Positions 22,748 to 61,329 of a stretch of DNA of 64,000 nucleotides are shown one piece after another (within the stretch, counting starts at the first letter, position 1; each line of letters starts with the position of its first letter). The notes below the pieces were generated by a model. It was not told the origin of the DNA and made no database searches. It saw nothing but the letters and a program-made list of their open reading frames with translations. A program made the translations under genes and the position numbers. The DNA comes from Adineta vaga (taxonomy: Eukaryota; Animalia; Rotifera): assembly GCA_021613535.1 (NCBI GenBank), contig CP075493.1, forward strand, positions 1,736,001 through 1,800,000, read 5' to 3'.

Positions 22748-23800
22748 CGTTCGATTCAACAAGAATAAAGAATTATTTTAAAGATTCGTCTTCCTTTTCT
22801 TTTCCTTTCTCTCGATTATATTAGACATTTTCTTTGAAATATGTTTCTCTAGAGAATAATCGAACAGATGATTGAAGTTCTTATTTTGATTAGATCTAAT
22901 CAAAGTATTTCTGAGTAAAAGTATCTATAAATAATATTCATGTACTTTCAATGTACTGATGTTATTTTTTACATATAGGTGTTAGATACATAGCACGAGA
23001 TGTTCTTTCAATTTAATATTCACAATATAGGAAGGGAGCTTCTTCGAAACCTTTTCGCAAAATGTTTGCTTGTGAAAATATACTGCGAAGTCTTAGCTAT
23101 CAAACGCTGAAAATTGTAGGGCTCTATCATAGTTCTTTCGAAAGTTATTCAAAAAATATTGAAGTATCTTAATTTCTGACTCTGATAAAGAAAAAGTTAT
23201 ATATTTAAATAGCGTATATCTTCCTTATTAATCGATTAAGTGTTGCAGGTAAAGGATTTAATAAAATGCACTACTCAGAAGTATTGTAGGTTTACTTTCA
23301 GTTTTTCGAACTAATTGTACCAAAAAGTTACAATTCACTCAGCTATTCTGTGCTGTATTAAAATCATGTTTCACTCGGTAGTCATTTGACAAATTAGAGA
23401 ACTTTTCTTTTCGAGGAAATTTCTTAATATACCACCAAAATATTCAGACTTCGTGTTTTTCTGGAAAAAATAATAAAAGGAAACTTTGAAGGAGCTGAAT
23501 GTAATATAGAAAGTCTTTCAAAATACGCTTTCCAAAAGGAAGCTGATATAGAAGTCAAAGAATCTTGCATTTCAATGAGTAACCATAAAAAATTTATTGG
23601 ACGTCTTCATTTTTTACTGCATCTTAAATTCAAATTGAAATGAGCAAAGCAAGGCTTCTGATATCATCCACTATACTACAACAACATACAAAGAGATAAA
23701 ATACTCTTCCATTATTTATATATCATGAAATATAACAATGATGTTCCTTTATTTCTCTTCGCTGCGTAACTTGACAATCATTTATGTTTTAAGAAGTCCT

Positions 23801-24898
23801 TATTCGTATTGTTGCTAATAATTTGTATCGTTGGTATGAAAATCCATGTACATTTAGTTACTCTACAGTCTTTTGGAATTTCTCGCAGTAAGAACATTTC
23901 TTTATTGATTTCCAGTAGTTTTTCTTTATTATACCTCTAAATGGCAAAAAGAGATCGATTGGATGGCATCAATATAGTCTATGCAACAACTGGAATGGAA
24001 TACATTTATAATAAGGTTTGAAATTGAAATTAACTTAGCCGTCTTTGTTCTCAGTTTTTGTTAGGTTTTCCTACGAATGGGTTTTCCACAAAATGAACTT
24101 GATAGTTATTTTACTGATCCTGCTTTTCTTGAGTTATTTGTTTCAGTGGAAAAACAATAGGTTTCGTATGGATAATCTTCAACAATACGGTGGTCCTCTA
24201 TCGAGTAGTTGGCATCAATCACAATTTCAACTTGCCAAACAAATCATTCATCGAATGACTGATATTGGTATCATACCAGTTTAACAAGCGTTTACTGGTT
24301 TTATGCCTCGCACTGCTCCTTCGTGAGTGGAAAACTGATTGATTTTGAGAACAAATGAAGAAAGTGTATTTTCTCATCATTGTTTAGACGCTTTCCAACA
24401 GCAAAATTTTATAGATCATCAGATTGGGTTGGCTTTGGTTGCGATGAATCCAAGTTGGTATTCTAATTAAAAAAAGGTTTGTTTTGTTATGAAATAGTTT
24501 ATACATTCTAGTTTACCCTATTTGGATCCTACTGATCCATTTTTGCAACGAGTTGGAGTCGAATTACTAAATGAAGTAGGTTGAGTTCAAAGCATATGAT
24601 GATAAATCATCTTATTCAATTCTCTATTGAATCTGATAAGTTGGACAGTTACAGCACTGAATTTAACATCTCATTATTATGCTTGTGATTTGTTCAATGA
24701 AATGATACTACCAAACAGGTAATGTATATTTATGTAATATCATGAAATATTTAATTCTTTTTTTTTTTATTTCTGGGTGATTCAATTCTTATTGCTCGAC
24801 AATTATTTAACAAATATCGTTTATCTCTACGTGACATTAATTTACCAAAAAGATCATCATCAAAAAATGGAATTTCTCTTAAATATAAGATCAATTGA
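23801..24898 (+). pseudogene. NAGLU: Alpha-N-acetylglucosaminidase (GH89) pseudogene: middle exons joined to the last exon
   Basis: ENPCTFSYSTVFWNF, WQKEIDWM, FRMDNLQQYGGPLSSSWHQSQFQLAKQIIHRMTDIGIIPV-stop, LDPTDPF, YACDLFNEM, then the last exon GDSILIARQLFNKY. Defects: premature TAA (24282-24284), frameshifting deletions and a mutated acceptor. Confidence 0.9.
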
Positions 24899-25057
24899 TC
24901 TAAACGAAACTTATACATTCCTTACTATTTGATTCCAATGAAACTTTCGCTTTTTCCTAAACATTGAATTTTCTATTTTATGATGATTATAGGAATAATA
25001 TCTTTTTATTTAAAATAAAATGAAATAGTGACATAGATTTTTTTCCAAAAAAATTCT

Positions 25058-26490
25058 TTAAGTTGATTGTCGAGTGGTTGTTTGTAGAGGAGCCGATGGA
25101 TTGTGTGTAAGGCGTTCATAATCAATGTTTTCCATCCAATCCTTGAATTTGATACATATTGCTCGAATGATCAATGGAGATACTGTATTTATTGATGTGA
25201 TATATAAGTACGAAACAATAACTACGATAGGTATTTGAGTTTTCAAATGATATGTGGAAGTTTCAGTATGATCAGATGTAGTAGAAGAGAAATATTTTAT
25301 GCAATCTTCGTATATAGTTGACTACATCTTACACATAATAGAACCCATACAAATGCCTAAAATACCTAAATAATAAATTGTATTGATATAGATTAACATA
25401 ATTCTGTCGAAGCTATAAAGTATACATTTCCAGGTATATTCACCTGTTATCTGAATAGCAGTAATAATACACACATAAAGCATAGATATACTTTTTGAGA
25501 ACTAAAAGCGATTAGATATATCTAATATGTGACAATATATGTAATACGTTTATACAAGAGCATCATGCATTCTCAAGTTTTGTTATACAAAAAACAAAAA
25601 AGCAAAACAACACAACACCTTATAAAAGGATGGATCTTCTTACATTTTCTATACGGGCTTCATCATAATGTTTTTTTATCATTAATATTCGAACTTGTAG
25701 ATTTGAATAGATCTATCATTGAAAAAGAATAACATAAACTCAAATTAACTAACACTCAGTAAGAGAATTATAAATTTTCACAATTATAACAATAGTGATG
25801 AACTTACTTGCAGCTGTAAATAACCATAACATGATCTTTGATCGAGATGAAGATGGTGATGGTGACGGAGATGGTGAAGGTTTACCATCTGAAACATAAA
25901 GAGAGAGTATATTCTAAAATCAAATATTTAGCTTCTCACTATAAGGATAGACTACCCAGGTCGACAAATCCGATATTGGATCCGATAGGACCCTATAGGA
26001 TCCAACGTTCCTACAAAACCCTATCGGATTCCTGGTGACGGATCTGTATTGGATTCTGCCAGTAAAATTTCCGTCGGAAGCTGCATATTTTATGAGCGTT
26101 CTTTTTAGCTATATTTTATTACGGCCTTATGCCCACCTATCGGATCCGTCGAAATCCGTTTTTTGGAAACTATAGGATCATGTGTTGGATCCGGATCCGA
26201 GTATCGGATTGATCGAACTGGGTACTTCATAGATGACATTTGAATCCCAGTCCCATGAATAGTTTCCATCAGCATTGAAAGGTATACTAAAAATAAAGTT
26301 GTCTCTTTCGATTATGTGAACATATTTATTTTACACAACACATATATCGATCAGAGTTATCGAATTTATATCGTATACTCAAAGCACCAGGAAATGTTTC
26401 TTTAAAATATCGACGATTAATGGTATTATCGGGCGATAACGCCAACATAATAATTTTATTTTCACGATCAGAAAATTGAACGACTCGCAT
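25058..26490 (-). pseudogene. Degraded multi-exon gene with a TDP-43 N-terminal-like domain and hydrophobic C-terminal exons (copy A)
   Basis: MRVVQFSDRENKIIMLALSPDNTINRRYFKETFPGALSIRYKFDNSDRYM|IPFNADGNYSWDWDSNVIYEV resembles the TDP-43 NTD (FPGACGLRYR...WGNLVYVV). Exon 2 is interrupted by a MITE and later exons are frameshifted. Confidence 0.55.
25955..26222. mobile_element. MITE, 268 bp, CCCAGG...CTGGG termini, ~30 bp imperfect TIR, 2-bp TSD (TA)
   Basis: Filled site gacTA[cccaggtcgacaaatccgata...tatcggattgatcgaactggg]TActtc. The paralogous empty site gacTActtc is in copy B (~58852-58860). Confidence 0.92.
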
Positions 26491-26775
26491 GATGATCAAT
26501 AATTATATCTTAATGAATCTAAAAATGAGATAATCATACAACATAGACATAGTTTTAGTTATTTAACGGGTTATAACTATATATCAATCGTCGGGTCAGA
26601 ATCACGGAGTCAGAACAAAGAAAAAAATGCCGATTACAACTGGTAAAAGCGACACCTAATCATAAATTTTGTAAATGCCATACGTAGAGCAAGAACTAAC
26701 AATAGCTTCCATTTATACACTGACGTCTATATACACTAGGTTAGAAATTACCGCCCTATATTCATTTTCTCTTTC

Positions 26776-27103
26776 CAAACTGTTTCTGATTTAATATCAA
26801 GAATATTGGATGGAGCTGTAGCCGCAAAACGTTTTGAAATCGTAGTTAATGCAAATTTAGCGGTTAATGGCAAAGATGTTTTTGAAATTTTTAATGGATC
26901 AACATCATGTTCAATACGTATATCTGCATCGACAAGTCTAGCTGCAGCTTGGGGTTTCAATTACTATTTAAAATATGTAGCAGATGGTTCAGGTACTAAA
27001 TAATAAATGTGTCACTTGAAAAATATTCATTTATTTCCTTCTATAATTTACTGGTCAGGTAAGAATAATTGGATGAATGGTTCTAATTAGTTTCAGTACG
27101 TGA
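26776..27103 (+). pseudogene. NAGLU: NAGLU pseudogene, 5' exons (lying downstream of the 3' exons in copy A)
   Basis: QTVSDLISRILDGAVAAKRFEIVV...SASTSLAAAWGFNYYLKY...YWSGKN matches the NAGLU N-terminal domain. Confidence 0.85.
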
Positions 27104-27378
27104 TATCAAATATTAGCATTCACAATGTTTGCTTTGTTCGACACGAATACATAATTCAATGAATTTTTCAATTTGGTGAATAAAATTTCTGTAGGACATT
27201 GAATTGACGAGAAAAAGATATTCTATCTATAAAGCGTTTGCGAATTCAAAATTTTCAGTTTAATTTCACGTCAAATACATGATTTGCGTTGCTTCAAAAG
27301 ATTTTCATTTTATGTGATAAGACAAAAATTTTTGTTCTTTATTTATTTATATATATATATAAATAAAACAAATTATTT

Positions 27379-28904
27379 TTACGATGAACAAGCACAAGAT
27401 GCTGCATGTTCAGCTGAATATACAAATGCTTCCGTAGCTAATACCGGATGTTGTTCAACTAATAAACGCCAATCATCTGTTTCGATGACTTGAAGAATAT
27501 TTCGCATAATAAAATTTAAAATACGTTTTTTCAATTCATGTGCATTGTGTAAATCAGCAACAATAAAAAGCATTGTACAATTAGATATCGATAATGAATT
27601 GATCATAATTAATTCTGCTTTTTGCTTCAAAAATTCTAATTGATATTTATCAGCAGCTTTGAATATTTCTATGGCATTATGTTCGTTGATATCTTCAACA
27701 TTTGAAGTGTAAATATATTCAAGTAAACAACGCACAGTTTCAGGTTGTAAATCAGTTATTTCAATTGATGAATTTTGATCTTCCAACATTGAATGAGAAA
27801 ACATTGCAGCAAATACTGGACTACGAGCCTAAACACGTAAGATGAAGAAAATGAACATATATTTTACAACTATTGTTCACATCATAGAATTGTTATATCT
27901 TTACTTACACTTAATATGCTTCGATGAACATAAAATGTCATTGTTGTAGATGTTGACGGAGTTGCTAATGCTGTTGATGTTGTTTCATCTGATGATTCAC
28001 CTGCTCCGTTACTTCCTCCTGAATTTGTACTATATCGTTTTCGTTTTATTCGACTGTTATTTCTTTTCGGCACTGATGTTGATGATGATGGTATATCTGA
28101 TGATCTATTTTCATAGGTCATGTTATTGAATTGTTCTGGTCGAACAATAATCGTAACATCATAACAACCGTCTTTCCTTGATGTTAATAATGAACCAAAA
28201 TGTGTGGATAATGACATCAAACTTTCGCATGTATTCTTTTTTTCTTCATGAATTATTGATGATGAAGATTCTCCAACAATAATAACACGAGCAAAAATTT
28301 TTAAACTTTGATCAGAATTTAATAGTTCAGATTTACGTTGTGTGGTCAATACCATACGCATTAAATATTCAGAATAACCCCAATCACCACCTGTAGGAAA
28401 TACATGATAAGGAGTTTTTCGTACAATATGAAATTCTCCACGACTATTAATTAAAGAAAATTCCGCTTTAGCTAATAGATCTGAACGACCACGAACATAT
28501 TTCACAAATAAACTAATATATTCAACTGACTTTTCATTGACACCTTTAGGATATAATTTTAAACACCAACTGAAAAACAAAGAAAAACTAGTTAATTCGA
28601 AAAATATAGAAAAAACGAATTTCTTTACCTTGTATCCGTATGGGGACCAAATGTGGGTGAAAAATATGAACTGAATAGAACACGAGGTGATTGAGGGTCA
28701 TCTATATCAATATCAAATAGAATAAAATAATGAGAAGAAAATAAAAACTCATAATAAACCTAAATATGATTGAAAATGATCAATTGTCCACAAATGTGTA
28801 AATGAAACAACTTTTCGATCAGTTAAACAAATTGAATGCGGAGGATTGGCTGAAAGTGGACGATTGCCACGAAAGTTTGAACGTTCAGTATTGCTGTTCG
28901 ACAT
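27379..28904 (-). CDS. SPOP-like MATH-BTB protein, 4 exons
   Basis: MATH: FTHLWTIDHF, WCLKLYPKG, YISLFVKY, GDWGYSEY. BTB: VHRSILS|ARSPVFAAMF, AADKYQL. BACK-like tail. Confidence 0.9.
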
Positions 28905-57070: not shown

Positions 57071-58051
57071 TATAAAATTTTGCTGTTGGAAAGCGTCTAA
57101 ACAATGATGAGAAAATACATTTTCTTCATTTATTCTCAAAATCAATCAGTTTTCCACTCACGAAGGAGCAGTGCGAGGCATAAAACCAGTAAACGCTTGT
57201 TAAACTGGTATGATACCAATATCAGTCATTCGATGAATGATTTGTTTGACAAGTTGAAATTGTGATTGATGCCAACTACTCGATAGAGGACCACCGTATT
57301 GTTGAAGATTATCCATACGAAACCTATTGTTTTTCCACTGAAACAAATAACTCAAGAAAAGAAGATTGTTCTTACTAAGCTAGAAAAGCAGGATCAGTAA
57401 AATAACTATCAAGTTCACTTTGTGGAAAACCCATTCGTAGAAAAACCTAACAAAAACTGAGAATAAAGACGGCTAAGTTAATTTCAATTTCAAACCTTAT
57501 TATAAATGTATTCCATTCCAGTTGTTGCGTAGACTATATTGATGCCATTCATCACCATCCAATCGATCTCTTTTTGCCATCTAGAGGTATAATAAAGAAA
57601 AACTACTGGAAATCAATAAAGAAATGTTCTTACTGCGAGAAATTCCAAAAGACTGCAGAGTAACTAAATGTACATGGATTTTCATACCAACGATACAAAT
57701 TATTAGCAATAATACGAATAGTTTCACGTACTGGAACTAATTAGAACCATTCATCCAATTATTCTTACCTGACCAATAAACTATAGTAGGAAATAAATGA
57801 ATATTTTTCAAGTGACACATTTATTATTTAGTACCTGAACCATCTGCTACATATTTTAAATAGTAATTGAAACCCCAAGCTACAGCTACACTTGTCGATG
57901 CAGATATACGTATTGAACATGCTGTTGATCCATTGAAAATTTCAAAAACATCTTTGCCATTAACTGCTAAATTTGCATTGACTACGATTTCAAAAGGTTT
58001 TGCGGCTGCAGCTCCATCCAATATTCTTGATATTAAATCAGAAACAGTTTG
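57071..58051 (-). pseudogene. NAGLU: NAGLU pseudogene, 5' and middle exons, truncated
   Basis: Same NAGLU motifs as copy A, in colinear order, with the same premature TAA after IGIIPV. Ends at RFPTAKFY. Confidence 0.88.
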
Positions 58052-58286
58052 GAAAGAGAAAATGAATATAGGGCGTTAATTTCTAACCTAGTGTATAGAG
58101 ACGTCAGTGTATAGATGGAAGCTATTGTTAGTTCTCGCTCTACGTATGGCATTTACAAAATTTATGATTAGGTGTCGCTTTTACCAGTTGTAATTGGCAT
58201 TTTTTTCTTTGTTCTGAATCCGTGATTCTGACCCGACGATTGATATATAGTTATAATCTGTTAAATAACTAAAACTATGTCTATAT

Positions 58287-58425
58287 CCCAGGTCAAACAA
58301 TACGGGCCGGTTCCGGCAGGAAAGTACCGGAAATTCCTGGAACATGGAAGCAGAATTCCGAGCGGAAATTTTCGGATTTTTTTCCGGTAAGTTCCGGTCA
58401 GTTCCCGCTGGAAAGCACAGGAAAC
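58287..58425. mobile_element. One-ended MITE fragment with CCCAGGTC terminus
   Basis: GC-rich insert starting cccaggtcaaacaat. It is absent from copy A, where ~26 bp of AT-rich sequence occupies the site. The second terminus is missing. Confidence 0.7.
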
Positions 58426-58451
58426 TCATTAAGATATAATTATTGATCATC

Positions 58452-59670
58452 ATGCAAGTCGTTCAAATTTCTGGTCGTAAAAATAAAATTGTTATGTTGG
58501 CGTTATCGCCCGATAACACCATCAATCGTCAATATTTTAAGCAAACATTTCCTGGTGCTTTCGGTATACAACATAAACTCGATAACTCTGATCGATATAT
58601 GAGGTGTGTAAAATAAATATGTTCACATAATCGAAACCCAGGTCGATCAATCCGATACTCGGATCCGATCGAATCCGATACAGATCCGTCACCAGGAATC
58701 CGATAGGGTTTTGTAGGAACGTTGGATCCTATAGGGTCCTATCGGATCCAATATCAGATTTGTCGACCTGGGAAGAGACAACTTTATTTTTAGTATACCT
58801 TTCAATGCTGATGGAAACTATTCATGGGACTGGGATTCAGATGTCATCTATGAAGTAGTCTATGCTTATAGTGAGAAGCTAAATATTTGATTTTAGAATA
58901 TACTCTCTCTTTATGTTTCAGATGGTAAACCTTCACCATCTCCATCTCGATCAAAGATCATGTCATGGTTATTTACAGCTGCAAGTAAGTTCATCACTAT
59001 TGTTATAATTGTGAAAATTTATAATTCTCTTACTGAGTGTTAGTTAATTTGAGTTTATGTTATTCTTTTTCAATGATAGATCTATTCAAATCTACAAGTT
59101 CGAATATTAATGATAAAAAAACATTATGATGAAGCCCGTATAGAAAATGTAAGAAGATCCATCCTTTTATATGGTGTTGTGTTCTTTTGTATTTTTGTTT
59201 TTTGTATAACAAAACTTGAGAATGCATGATGCTCTTGTATAAACGTATTACATATATTGTCACATATTAGATATATCTAATCGCTTTTAGTTCTCATAAA
59301 GTATATCTATGCTTTATGTGTGTAGTATTACTGCTATTCAGATAACAGGTGAATATACCTGGAAATGTATACTTTATAGCTTCGACAGAATTATGTTAAT
59401 CTATATCAATACAATTTATTATTTAGGTATTTTAGGCATTTGTATGGGTTCTATTATGTGTAAGATGTAGTCAACTATATACGAAGATTGCATAAAATAT
59501 TTCTCTTCTACTACATCTGATCATACTGAAACTTCCACATATCATTTGAAAACTCAAATACCTATCGTAGTTATTGTTTCGTCGTTATATATCACATCAA
59601 CATTGATTATGAACGCCTTACACACAATCCATCGGCTCCTCTACAAACAACCACTCGACAATCAACTTAA
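58452..59670 (+). pseudogene. Degraded TDP-43-N-like gene (copy B)
   Basis: MQVVQISGRKNKIVMLALSPDNTINRQYFKQTFPGAFGIQHK..|SIPFNADGNYSWDWDSDVIYEVVY|..GKPSPSPSRSK; frameshift in exon 4 and a ~65 bp deletion in the last exon. Confidence 0.55.
58637..58772. mobile_element. MITE, 136 bp, internally deleted relative of 25955-26222, 2-bp TSD (AA)
   Basis: Filled site atcgaAA[cccaggtcgatcaatccgata...tttgtcgacctggg]AAgagac. The empty site atcgaaagagac is in copy A (~26301-26312, minus strand). Confidence 0.92.
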
Positions 59671-59829
59671 AGAATTTTTTTGGAAAAAAATCTATGTCAC
59701 TATTTCATTTTATTTTAAATAAAAAGATATTATTCCTATAATCATCATAAAATAGAAAATTCAATGTTTAGGAAAAAGCGAAAGTTTCATTGGAATCAAA
59801 TAGTAAGGAATGTATAAGTTTCGTTTAGA

Positions 59830-59951
59830 TCAATTGATCTTATATTTAAGAGAAATTCCATTTTTTGATGATGATCTTTCTGGTAAATTAATGTCACGTA
59901 GAGATAAACGATATTTGTTAAATAATTGTCGAGCAATAAGAATTGAATCAC
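59830..59951 (-). pseudogene. NAGLU: Isolated NAGLU last exon
   Basis: tttctag|GDSILIARQLFNKYRLSLRDINLP...stop, resembling the NAGLU C-terminus. Confidence 0.7.
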
Positions 59952-61329
59952 CTAGAAATAAAAAAAACAACATGTTGTCTCGCATTGAATCAAATCAAAT
60001 TCCTACATATAATATTTTCAATAATTTGGCAGAGAGCACTCAGATAACTGAAAAAAACAACAGGCCTTACATTTGGATAAAATTGGTAATACATTTAAAA
60101 CTATTGTAACGGATCTCGATCTTTATTATTATCTTCATTATTGCTTATCAAACTTCTGATACTTAAATCTAATTTGATTTGTATAAGAAAATAAATGTCG
60201 AATAAACTAGAATAACAGAAGTTAACATCGAAAAACTGAGAATGTCACATGACGAAATCATGGAAGTTAAAGAGAACTTAGAATCCTTTTATTACACGAG
60301 TTTTTCTATAAATGTTCTTGATTATAGAAATTTTTACTATAATTTCATGGATCAGAATGTGACAAATAATTTTGCATATTGTGACATAGAAATCGTCAGT
60401 TCTAGTCCATCTGAAGTCTTGATTTACGCTGTTTCAGTCATCATTTTACAGAAAAACCATACATATACGGCTTTTCTAATTCAAAAATGTCCAGTTAGCT
60501 GAATAAAAAGAAATTTTCATCAGCATTCAATTACCCGCAACGTCTTTCAGCAGTTCATATCAGAAATTTAGTGATTTTCACTTAAAAATAACAAAACAGA
60601 GGAGCATTAACCAACCAAATGAAAAAGATTTCAATCATGATTTGTCAAATTCTTTTCAGTAACCTTATCTCTTCAGAGATTAAATTTAGACTCAACTTCA
60701 CGCAATTTATTGTATCATTCAAAATTGCATTGCTTTACATTCTAGTTGACCATGGAAAACATTTTAAAGATATTTATTCATATGGTCACTCAGACGAAAA
60801 GTCCTTGTTTCAAAGAAAAAACTTACTCGTAACAAATACGATACTAAGTATCACAATAAACTACTCTCGATGATCAGATTCATCACCAACATATCTTACA
60901 ACAATATATCGTACAAGAATACTTTACCTCCATTCCCTATATTGTGACCAAATAAGCATATTCTTCACTTCATCGTACTTTTTATCCTCAAGAAAGACAA
61001 AACACAAATACATTCAGTCACTTCTCAACGAAAACGAAGTTCAACGTTTCCAATATATTCTAACCTGCCTCTATTGAAAAATCTTATTCATTTATCAGCA
61101 GATATCTACCAAAAAAAAGCATCCACCATATTCACGATTTTCATCTTCTTTACCATATCAATCATTTTCCTCTATCCCTTTCACATATGACACCGTATGG
61201 TAACATAGCAATACACTTCAACGATTACTCGCACTTCTATAGATATCATAAGAAAAAAGGGATGAATTTCATTTCACGAACAATAATTTATTAATAAATT
61301 AAAAATAAAATCAACAAAACATAGAAAAA

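Follow-up and report, generated by a model that had tools for sequence, protein, structure and literature searches.

In this study, we describe a cyclically permuted duplicate in a 64,000-nucleotide stretch of the genome of Adineta vaga, a bdelloid rotifer (C1:1736001-1800000, hereafter the window). The window carries two fragments of a gene for the lysosomal enzyme alpha-N-acetylglucosaminidase (NAGLU) about 30 kb apart, copy A at 23801-27103 on the forward strand and copy B at 57071-60006 on the reverse strand, and A is a cyclic permutation of B: its blocks follow each other in the order X-Y-W-N, against W-N-X in B. We tentatively believe, with a confidence somewhat short of even, that A originated recently as a dispersed copy of a pseudogene segment W-J1-N-X-Y, similar to B, by way of circular DNA of one unit, J1 being the junction between W and N.

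The permuted order was obtained by blastn of positions 23001-28000 against the window and by base-level comparison, and it bears out the preliminary description of this DNA, which had called A a permuted duplicate. Block X (23801-24413, forward strand) holds the NAGLU TIM-barrel exons (PF05089 positions ~16-146) and matches 57720-57071 at 92.8% identity including a 37-nt indel, with 1.6% substitutions. Block Y (24414-24757, forward strand), which comprises the next NAGLU exons and the first 36 nt of the following intron, has no counterpart in B; it continues X in the same way as in the NAGLU loci C and D described below. The rest of A, 24758-27103, matches 59970-57724 in seven blocks at 92-99%, and consists of W (24758-26724), a 51-nt filler at J1 (26725-26775) and N (26776-27103), all on the forward strand; N is the exon of the NAGLU N-terminal domain (PF12971) together with the start of the next exon, and it ends 3 nt short of the start of X as positioned in the gene. 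The E-values of these matches were 0, and chance is ruled out. In B, the corresponding blocks lie on the reverse strand at 58103-60006 (W), 58052-58102 (filler), 57724-58051 (N) and 57071-57720 (X), the last being cut off mid-exon at 57071.

The two ends of A are neighbours in the gene. Its right end (..CAGTACGTGA) and its left end (TATTCGTATT..) are parted in B only by the trinucleotide AAC (57721-57723, reverse strand), which A lacks and which we propose as the opening point of the circle. The same spacing is found in the intact gene at locus C (C1:1493922-1493924), and the break falls within a coding exon. The earlier claim that the ends of A adjoin in B inside a NAGLU exon, with 3 nt between them, is therefore true in B and in C. 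The internal junction J2 (24722-24778, forward strand) is a hybrid intron of 57 nt and the candidate closure point of the circle. It begins with the GTAATG donor that follows the Y exon and continues through a T11 tract (24758-24768) into the acceptor region of the last NAGLU intron, in which the AG has mutated to GG in A. Homology between A and B begins exactly at the T tract, and C carries the donor of the post-Y intron as well as the T tract and acceptor of the last intron. The proposal that J2 joins two different NAGLU introns at the T tract, where homology to B ends, was thus confirmed by the presence of both introns in C.

The natural N-AAC-X continuity is kept in B and C. In B, the natural last intron also continues for 36 nt upstream of the T tract (59971-60006, missing in A), and 28 of these are identical to C. 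This indicates that J2 and the break at AAC arose on the line to A, and that J1, which A and B have in common, is earlier than both. J2 and the AAC break are specific to A, and the view that A is derived relative to a B-like structure is supported. A repeat search at the borders of A (23801 and 27103) gave only chance-level matches for terminal inverted repeats (TIRs) or target-site duplications, as the preliminary description had noted. Capture by a transposon (a Pack-type element or a Helitron) was rejected because no TIR, element ends or target duplication occur at these borders. Retroposition is excluded because A retains introns and 1.8 kb of 3' flank.

The genome-wide searches covered the six-contig, 100.8-Mb assembly and placed the two copies relative to the NAGLU genes. 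A third locus, C (C1:1489599-1494253, reverse strand), lies 270 kb upstream of the window copies and was recognized by genome search and Pfam as an intact NAGLU gene of block order N-X-Y-R-W, R being the rest of the gene. Its ohnologue, D (contig 4, 13400229-13402958), is also a complete NAGLU gene by Pfam. NAGLU_N, the TIM barrel and NAGLU_C are all present at C and D; A and B match only NAGLU_N and TIM-barrel positions 16-146 and are therefore fragments. C and D are syntenic, which makes C the ancestral NAGLU locus, with A and B as derived loci. The block order of B is itself permuted relative to C. B is not itself the NAGLU gene: it is a rearranged 5' pseudogene fragment already carrying J1, and the functional gene is C. 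Similarly, of the part of A from 24758 onwards, about 1.9 kb proved to be the last exon and 3' flank rather than the body of NAGLU. The N exon of A is annotated on the public A. vaga chromosome as hypothetical protein I4U23_000468 (identical protein match). The genome search found no further copy of the A/B-type unit, and no further NAGLU or W homology was found beside A or B. Head-to-tail copies at one locus were also sought; A and B are 30 kb apart, C is 270 kb away, and no array was seen. Downstream of C, at C1:1477856-1481771, we observed three tandem units of ~1.3 kb with 75-77% identity.

The site of A was compared with other genomes. A 2.6-kb contig with the same species label but strongly diverged sequence (X16) joins the flanks of A across ~613 bp, compared with 4440 bp in the window. 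Four contigs of related genomes, found via the flanking BTB open reading frame (ORF) and including one labelled Adineta ricciae (GCA_905250095.1), carry the same convergent G-protein-coupled receptor (GPCR) and BTB genes only 186-744 bp apart, compared with 4586 bp here, and no NAGLU-like DNA was found in any of the four. The empty-site check called for in the preliminary description was thereby answered in five lineages, where the spacer measures 0.2-0.75 kb against ~4.6 kb here. A is a genuine lineage-specific insertion. The look-up of the flanking BTB ORF by exact protein, made in search of further assemblies from the same strain, returned no record.

The corresponding check on the ohnologous chromosome gave a mixed result. 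Window positions 20903-55090 are collinear with contig 4 in inverted orientation, and NAGLU is absent from the ohnologous interval there; instead of an empty site, the interval holds unrelated ORFs, which shows only that NAGLU is not ancestral at that position. This GPCR-BTB interval (C4:12951901-12956624, 4.7 kb) holds an HSP20/alpha-crystallin-like ORF that neither the contig-1 interval nor the short spacers of the relatives contain. Except for a 96-bp repeat (23246-23341) with copies on other contigs, the flanks of A occur only once in the genome. Contigs at about half depth connect 23043/23045, on one strand, with 23247/23315 on the other, and this suggests a heterozygous inverted structure in the left flank of A (23043-23341). 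We also considered whether the flanks are diverged 5' and 3' parts of NAGLU, as after a rearrangement in place; neither blastn-short nor tblastx found homology.

Block W and junction J1 record an earlier rearrangement. W comprises the end of the last intron of NAGLU, the last coding exon (~24777-24905 in A; GDSILIARQLFNKY...) and ~1.8 kb of 3' flank with no convincing coding potential on this strand. At J1, the homology of W to C stops at C 1489599, the 51-nt filler follows, and past the filler the homology of N begins in the middle of a coding exon of C, at C 1494253. This indicates that J1 is an end-joined rearrangement junction and no natural intergenic spacer. Most of the filler, ~45 nt, resembles a dispersed repeat (88% over 41-48 nt) with copies at C6:8335647 and C5:11246119. 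A loose end at 26732 was suspected to be a hidden extra copy and proved to be this dispersed repeat.

The history of the copies was reconstructed from their substitutions. Codon counts were made exon block by exon block, and the N and X-Y blocks of A were put in gene order with an NNN spacer and aligned to C and D in one comparison. In N and X, 59 derived changes are common to A and B, 47 lie on the C branch, 7 are private to A and 4 to B. The TIM-barrel exon of both has the same premature stop (IIPV*QAFTG). The two copies are sisters. Substitutions between them amount to 1.6% for X; most of W shows 0.8-1.3%, and the end of W, like N, 3.4-3.7%. X does not stand out from W or N by a higher divergence, so the X of A and the X of B do not come from different old repeat units. 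The possibility that A is a slice across two old tandem units, with an X older than its W and N, was rejected on these values (1.6% for X, 0.8-1.3% for W and 3.7% for N) and on the common stop. In a 300-bp patch (B ~58200-58620, corresponding to A 26322-26620), the divergence rises to ~10%, with 22 changes private to B compared with about 1 per 100 bp elsewhere. This B-private cluster could reflect clustered mutation or conversion from an unsampled copy.

Compared with C, the divergence is sharply discordant: 29-33% in the NAGLU introns and 12.5-13% at coding sites, and only 6.9% in non-coding W (Fisher p ~1e-35). This points to ectopic exchange between loci that lie 270 kb from each other, or else to a chimeric origin. 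The history is thus a mosaic: the NAGLU part of A and B comes from an old, now fragmentary paralogue, and W has a much more recent common ancestry with the W of C. The young W could have arisen by gene conversion, by capture of a C-derived fragment at J1, or from a paralogue that once lay just downstream of C. Overwriting of C by its ohnologue D was rejected, the C-D divergence (30%) being close to that of A and D (33%).

The C branch and the A/B branch show the same amount of synonymous change (0.108 each), and their ratios of nonsynonymous to synonymous change (pN/pS) are 0.13 and 0.57, respectively. By a rough calculation, this agrees with a paralogue that kept its function over about half of its history and decayed afterwards. 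In a tree of N-exon translations, A/B is the sister of C, inside the copy of the nearest relative, which indicates that the paralogue arose in this lineage. We also considered whether relatives carry a second paralogue or a tandem NAGLU pair; a search with the N exon found no A/B-type gene there.

Later, each copy was hit by its own transposon. A family resembling miniature inverted-repeat transposable elements (MITEs), with TIR CCCAGGTCGACAAATCCGATA, has a 268-nt copy in A only (25955-26222, no strand assigned, with 23-nt TIRs and a TA target duplication) and a 136-nt, internally deleted copy in B only (58637-58772), 85 bp away in homologous coordinates. Both the smaller element and the B-private cluster described above lie in the B copy of W. 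C is empty at both sites. The elements in A and B are two independent insertions made after the split of the copies, so the family was active after that split; at least 40 related copies with 73-97% identity are spread over all six contigs.

The junctions of A were checked against contigs from sequencing runs of this species made in three studies (2013, 2015 and 2022), as they appear among the matches listed. The left junction (23800/23801) is bridged by contigs of the three studies (23502-23841), unbranched and at about the depth of the flanks. J2 (24757/24758) is likewise bridged in the three studies by contigs running from 24384 or 24403 to 24805 with zero mismatches. Of the three junctions for which the preliminary description had asked for long reads, these two are supported by such contigs. 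Depth sums over W are ~3-4 times those of the flanks, which fits A, B and C together and indicates that there is no hidden array.

On these results, we propose how A was made. In the circle route, which we infer together with the closure microhomology and a donor at the present site of B, a W-J1-N-X-Y segment would have been closed by end-joining of the intron after the Y exon to the T tract of the last NAGLU intron, which would have created J2. The circle would then have opened in the exon at AAC with the loss of 3 nt and integrated inverted, with no duplication of its target, into the short spacer between the convergent GPCR and BTB genes ~30 kb away. Later, each copy would have received its own MITE insertion, and B would have lost Y or have been already without it. 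We regard a one-unit circle as the most economical reading of this last step, because closure at J2 and opening at AAC would give both new features in one event and make A exactly one unit long. By a rough estimate, a random linear slice of a 3.3-kb unit would have such neighbouring ends in ~0.3% of cases. Of the sequence of circularization, reopening and inverted reintegration put forward in the preliminary description, the insertion, the adjacent ends, J2 and the polarity stood; the circle itself is only the most economical account and competes with a tandem route.

Several points weigh against the circle. The evidence is a static footprint. No source holding the whole unit was found: B is without Y, and C has all blocks but is 7-33% diverged and lacks J1. 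With Y gone from the donor, the microhomology at closure and the extent of the full unit are putative. The boundary of W in B lies only 36 nt from the J2 point of A. The existence of an earlier junction, J1, implies a complex history and raises the prior for tandem or multi-step intermediates. The divergence between A and B is uneven (~1% in X and most of W, ~3.5% in N and ~10% in the patch), which implies later gene conversion or clustered mutation. About 300 bp to the left of A (~23500-23800) are also absent from X16. The right junction (27103/27104) has no bridging contig among the matches listed, where one contig starts at 27108; this neither supports nor contradicts the junction. Finally, the contig over Y and J2 (24384-24805) has about half the flank depth in three runs (18.5 vs 26-31, 18.4 vs 33-38 and 59 vs 104-119), which could be due to hemizygosity or to AT-rich coverage bias.

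The strongest competitor, which we nevertheless consider unlikely, dispenses with the circle: a tandem duplication, of the donor or of a collinear copy at the site of A, would have made J2, and A would be a linear slice of it or the remnant of two deletions. This is the classic false positive of the circle signature described by Takahashi & Innan (PMC7188851). Tandem duplications are common, the lineage already has J1, and B is truncated on both sides, so deletions did happen here. However, this route needs two cuts within 3 nt of homologous positions, the ~0.3% case of the rough estimate above; moreover, neither A nor B has an extra flanking block, no other copy exists in the genome, and the depth gives no sign of a collapsed array.

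A different circle is somewhat more doubtful again. It would have popped out of a J1 tandem array by homologous recombination, or have been closed at J1 from a full-length paralogue, and have integrated separately at A and at B, J2 being a later 1.6-kb deletion in A. J1 is indeed common to both copies and resembles an end-joined closure with captured filler, and if the deletion in A were undone, the result would be one exact period with its opening at AAC. Against this, the divergence from C changes across J1 from ~7% in W to 29-33% in the NAGLU introns, and this old/young discordance means that W and N-X are not one paralogue unit unless extra gene conversion is added. The route also requires a vanished donor, two integrations and a later deletion, as well as the coincidence that the boundary of B and the end of the deletion in A lie 36 nt apart. 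In addition, the pN/pS ratio and the shared stop point to a single long-lived pseudogene lineage before the recent split of A and B.

Template switching of the FoSTeS/MMBIR type (fork stalling and template switching/microhomology-mediated break-induced replication) is improbable. Here, a broken or stalled end at the site of A would have copied X-Y, switched at the T tract to W-N and returned. The position of J2 at a T tract, junctions without target duplications, and a donor and an insertion on the same chromosome 30 kb apart all agree with it. But it offers no reason why copying should end within 3 nt of its start, and the similarity of the left flank to A (a 14-nt exact match, E ~0.01) is at chance level. 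An inversion with staggered breaks was rejected, since it gives collinear inverted copies with no permutation, and the 30 kb between A and B are collinear with the ohnologue. An assembly artefact mixing B-like and C-like reads is very improbable: a right junction without a bridging contig among the matches listed and the half depth of the Y/J2 contig are in its favour, while error-free contigs from three studies of 2013-2022 cross the left junction and likewise J2, A has private substitutions and its own MITE insertion, and its N exon is annotated on the public chromosome.

Circle-mediated duplication is known in yeast. In cattle, the original work on the KIT translocations Cs29 and Cs6 reportedly concerned hundreds of kb, an inter-chromosomal move and a phenotype. 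The case described here, in contrast, involves 3.3 kb of pseudogene with no evident function. What it has in common with the cattle case is a germline-fixed duplicate whose permuted order would imply a circle opened and reintegrated elsewhere; colour-sidedness through these translocations via circular intermediates is discussed in PMC12235870. For human duplicates, the swapped-block signature, its tandem false positive, validation by reads and polarity from outgroups have been set out (PMC7188851). As in those insertions of extrachromosomal circular DNA (eccDNA), two blocks are swapped here between source and copy, the copy lies at a distance on the same chromosome, junctions are checked by reads, and outgroups tell donor from recipient. 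The present case differs in its donor, which is itself a rearranged piece of pseudogene now lacking part of the unit, in its proposed closure, which joins two introns of a single gene, and in the organism, a bdelloid rotifer.

In a recent preprint, 82 of the 327 source-resolved polymorphic human insertions were classed as AB->BA eccDNA insertions, mostly intrachromosomal and enriched for terminal microhomology (10.64898/2026.09.03.749254). The present locus resembles them in being intrachromosomal and in its proposed joining by end-joining or microhomology; those calls, however, needed at least 95% source coverage and a unique source, whereas here Y is missing from B and there are three paralogous loci. 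For large human segmental duplications, a circle has been inferred from reversed block order (PMC7450558); that order is also seen here, and the two differ in scale. A full-text literature search, judged by title and abstract, found no report of circle-mediated duplication in rotifers, and the word "circular" is absent from a 2026 paper on repair in A. vaga. The statement in the preliminary description that the route is known elsewhere and undescribed in rotifers is in line with the human and cattle cases and, at the level of titles and abstracts, with this search. The signature is already established in humans and cattle, and the locus would add a rotifer case of that route.

The inserted DNA is a pseudogene fragment without evident function, and its worth lies in the mechanism. 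If the circle reading is true, the locus offers a clean case, open to dating, in which an extrachromosomal circle went back into the germline of an animal that is asexual and tolerates desiccation: A and B differ by ~1-3.6%, and the insertion took place after a wild lineage had split off. Central questions for the group are how shattered genomes are repaired in bdelloids and how new DNA is taken up. That germline circles are a recurrent route of dispersed duplication in bdelloids, arising from repair after desiccation and possibly carrying foreign DNA, is a broader idea that we think quite unlikely at present, and its link to desiccation is speculation. The locus also illustrates the fast reshaping of a gene family, in which a lineage-specific paralogue was functional, was rearranged, was partly homogenized with its parent, was copied again and was hit twice by one MITE family.

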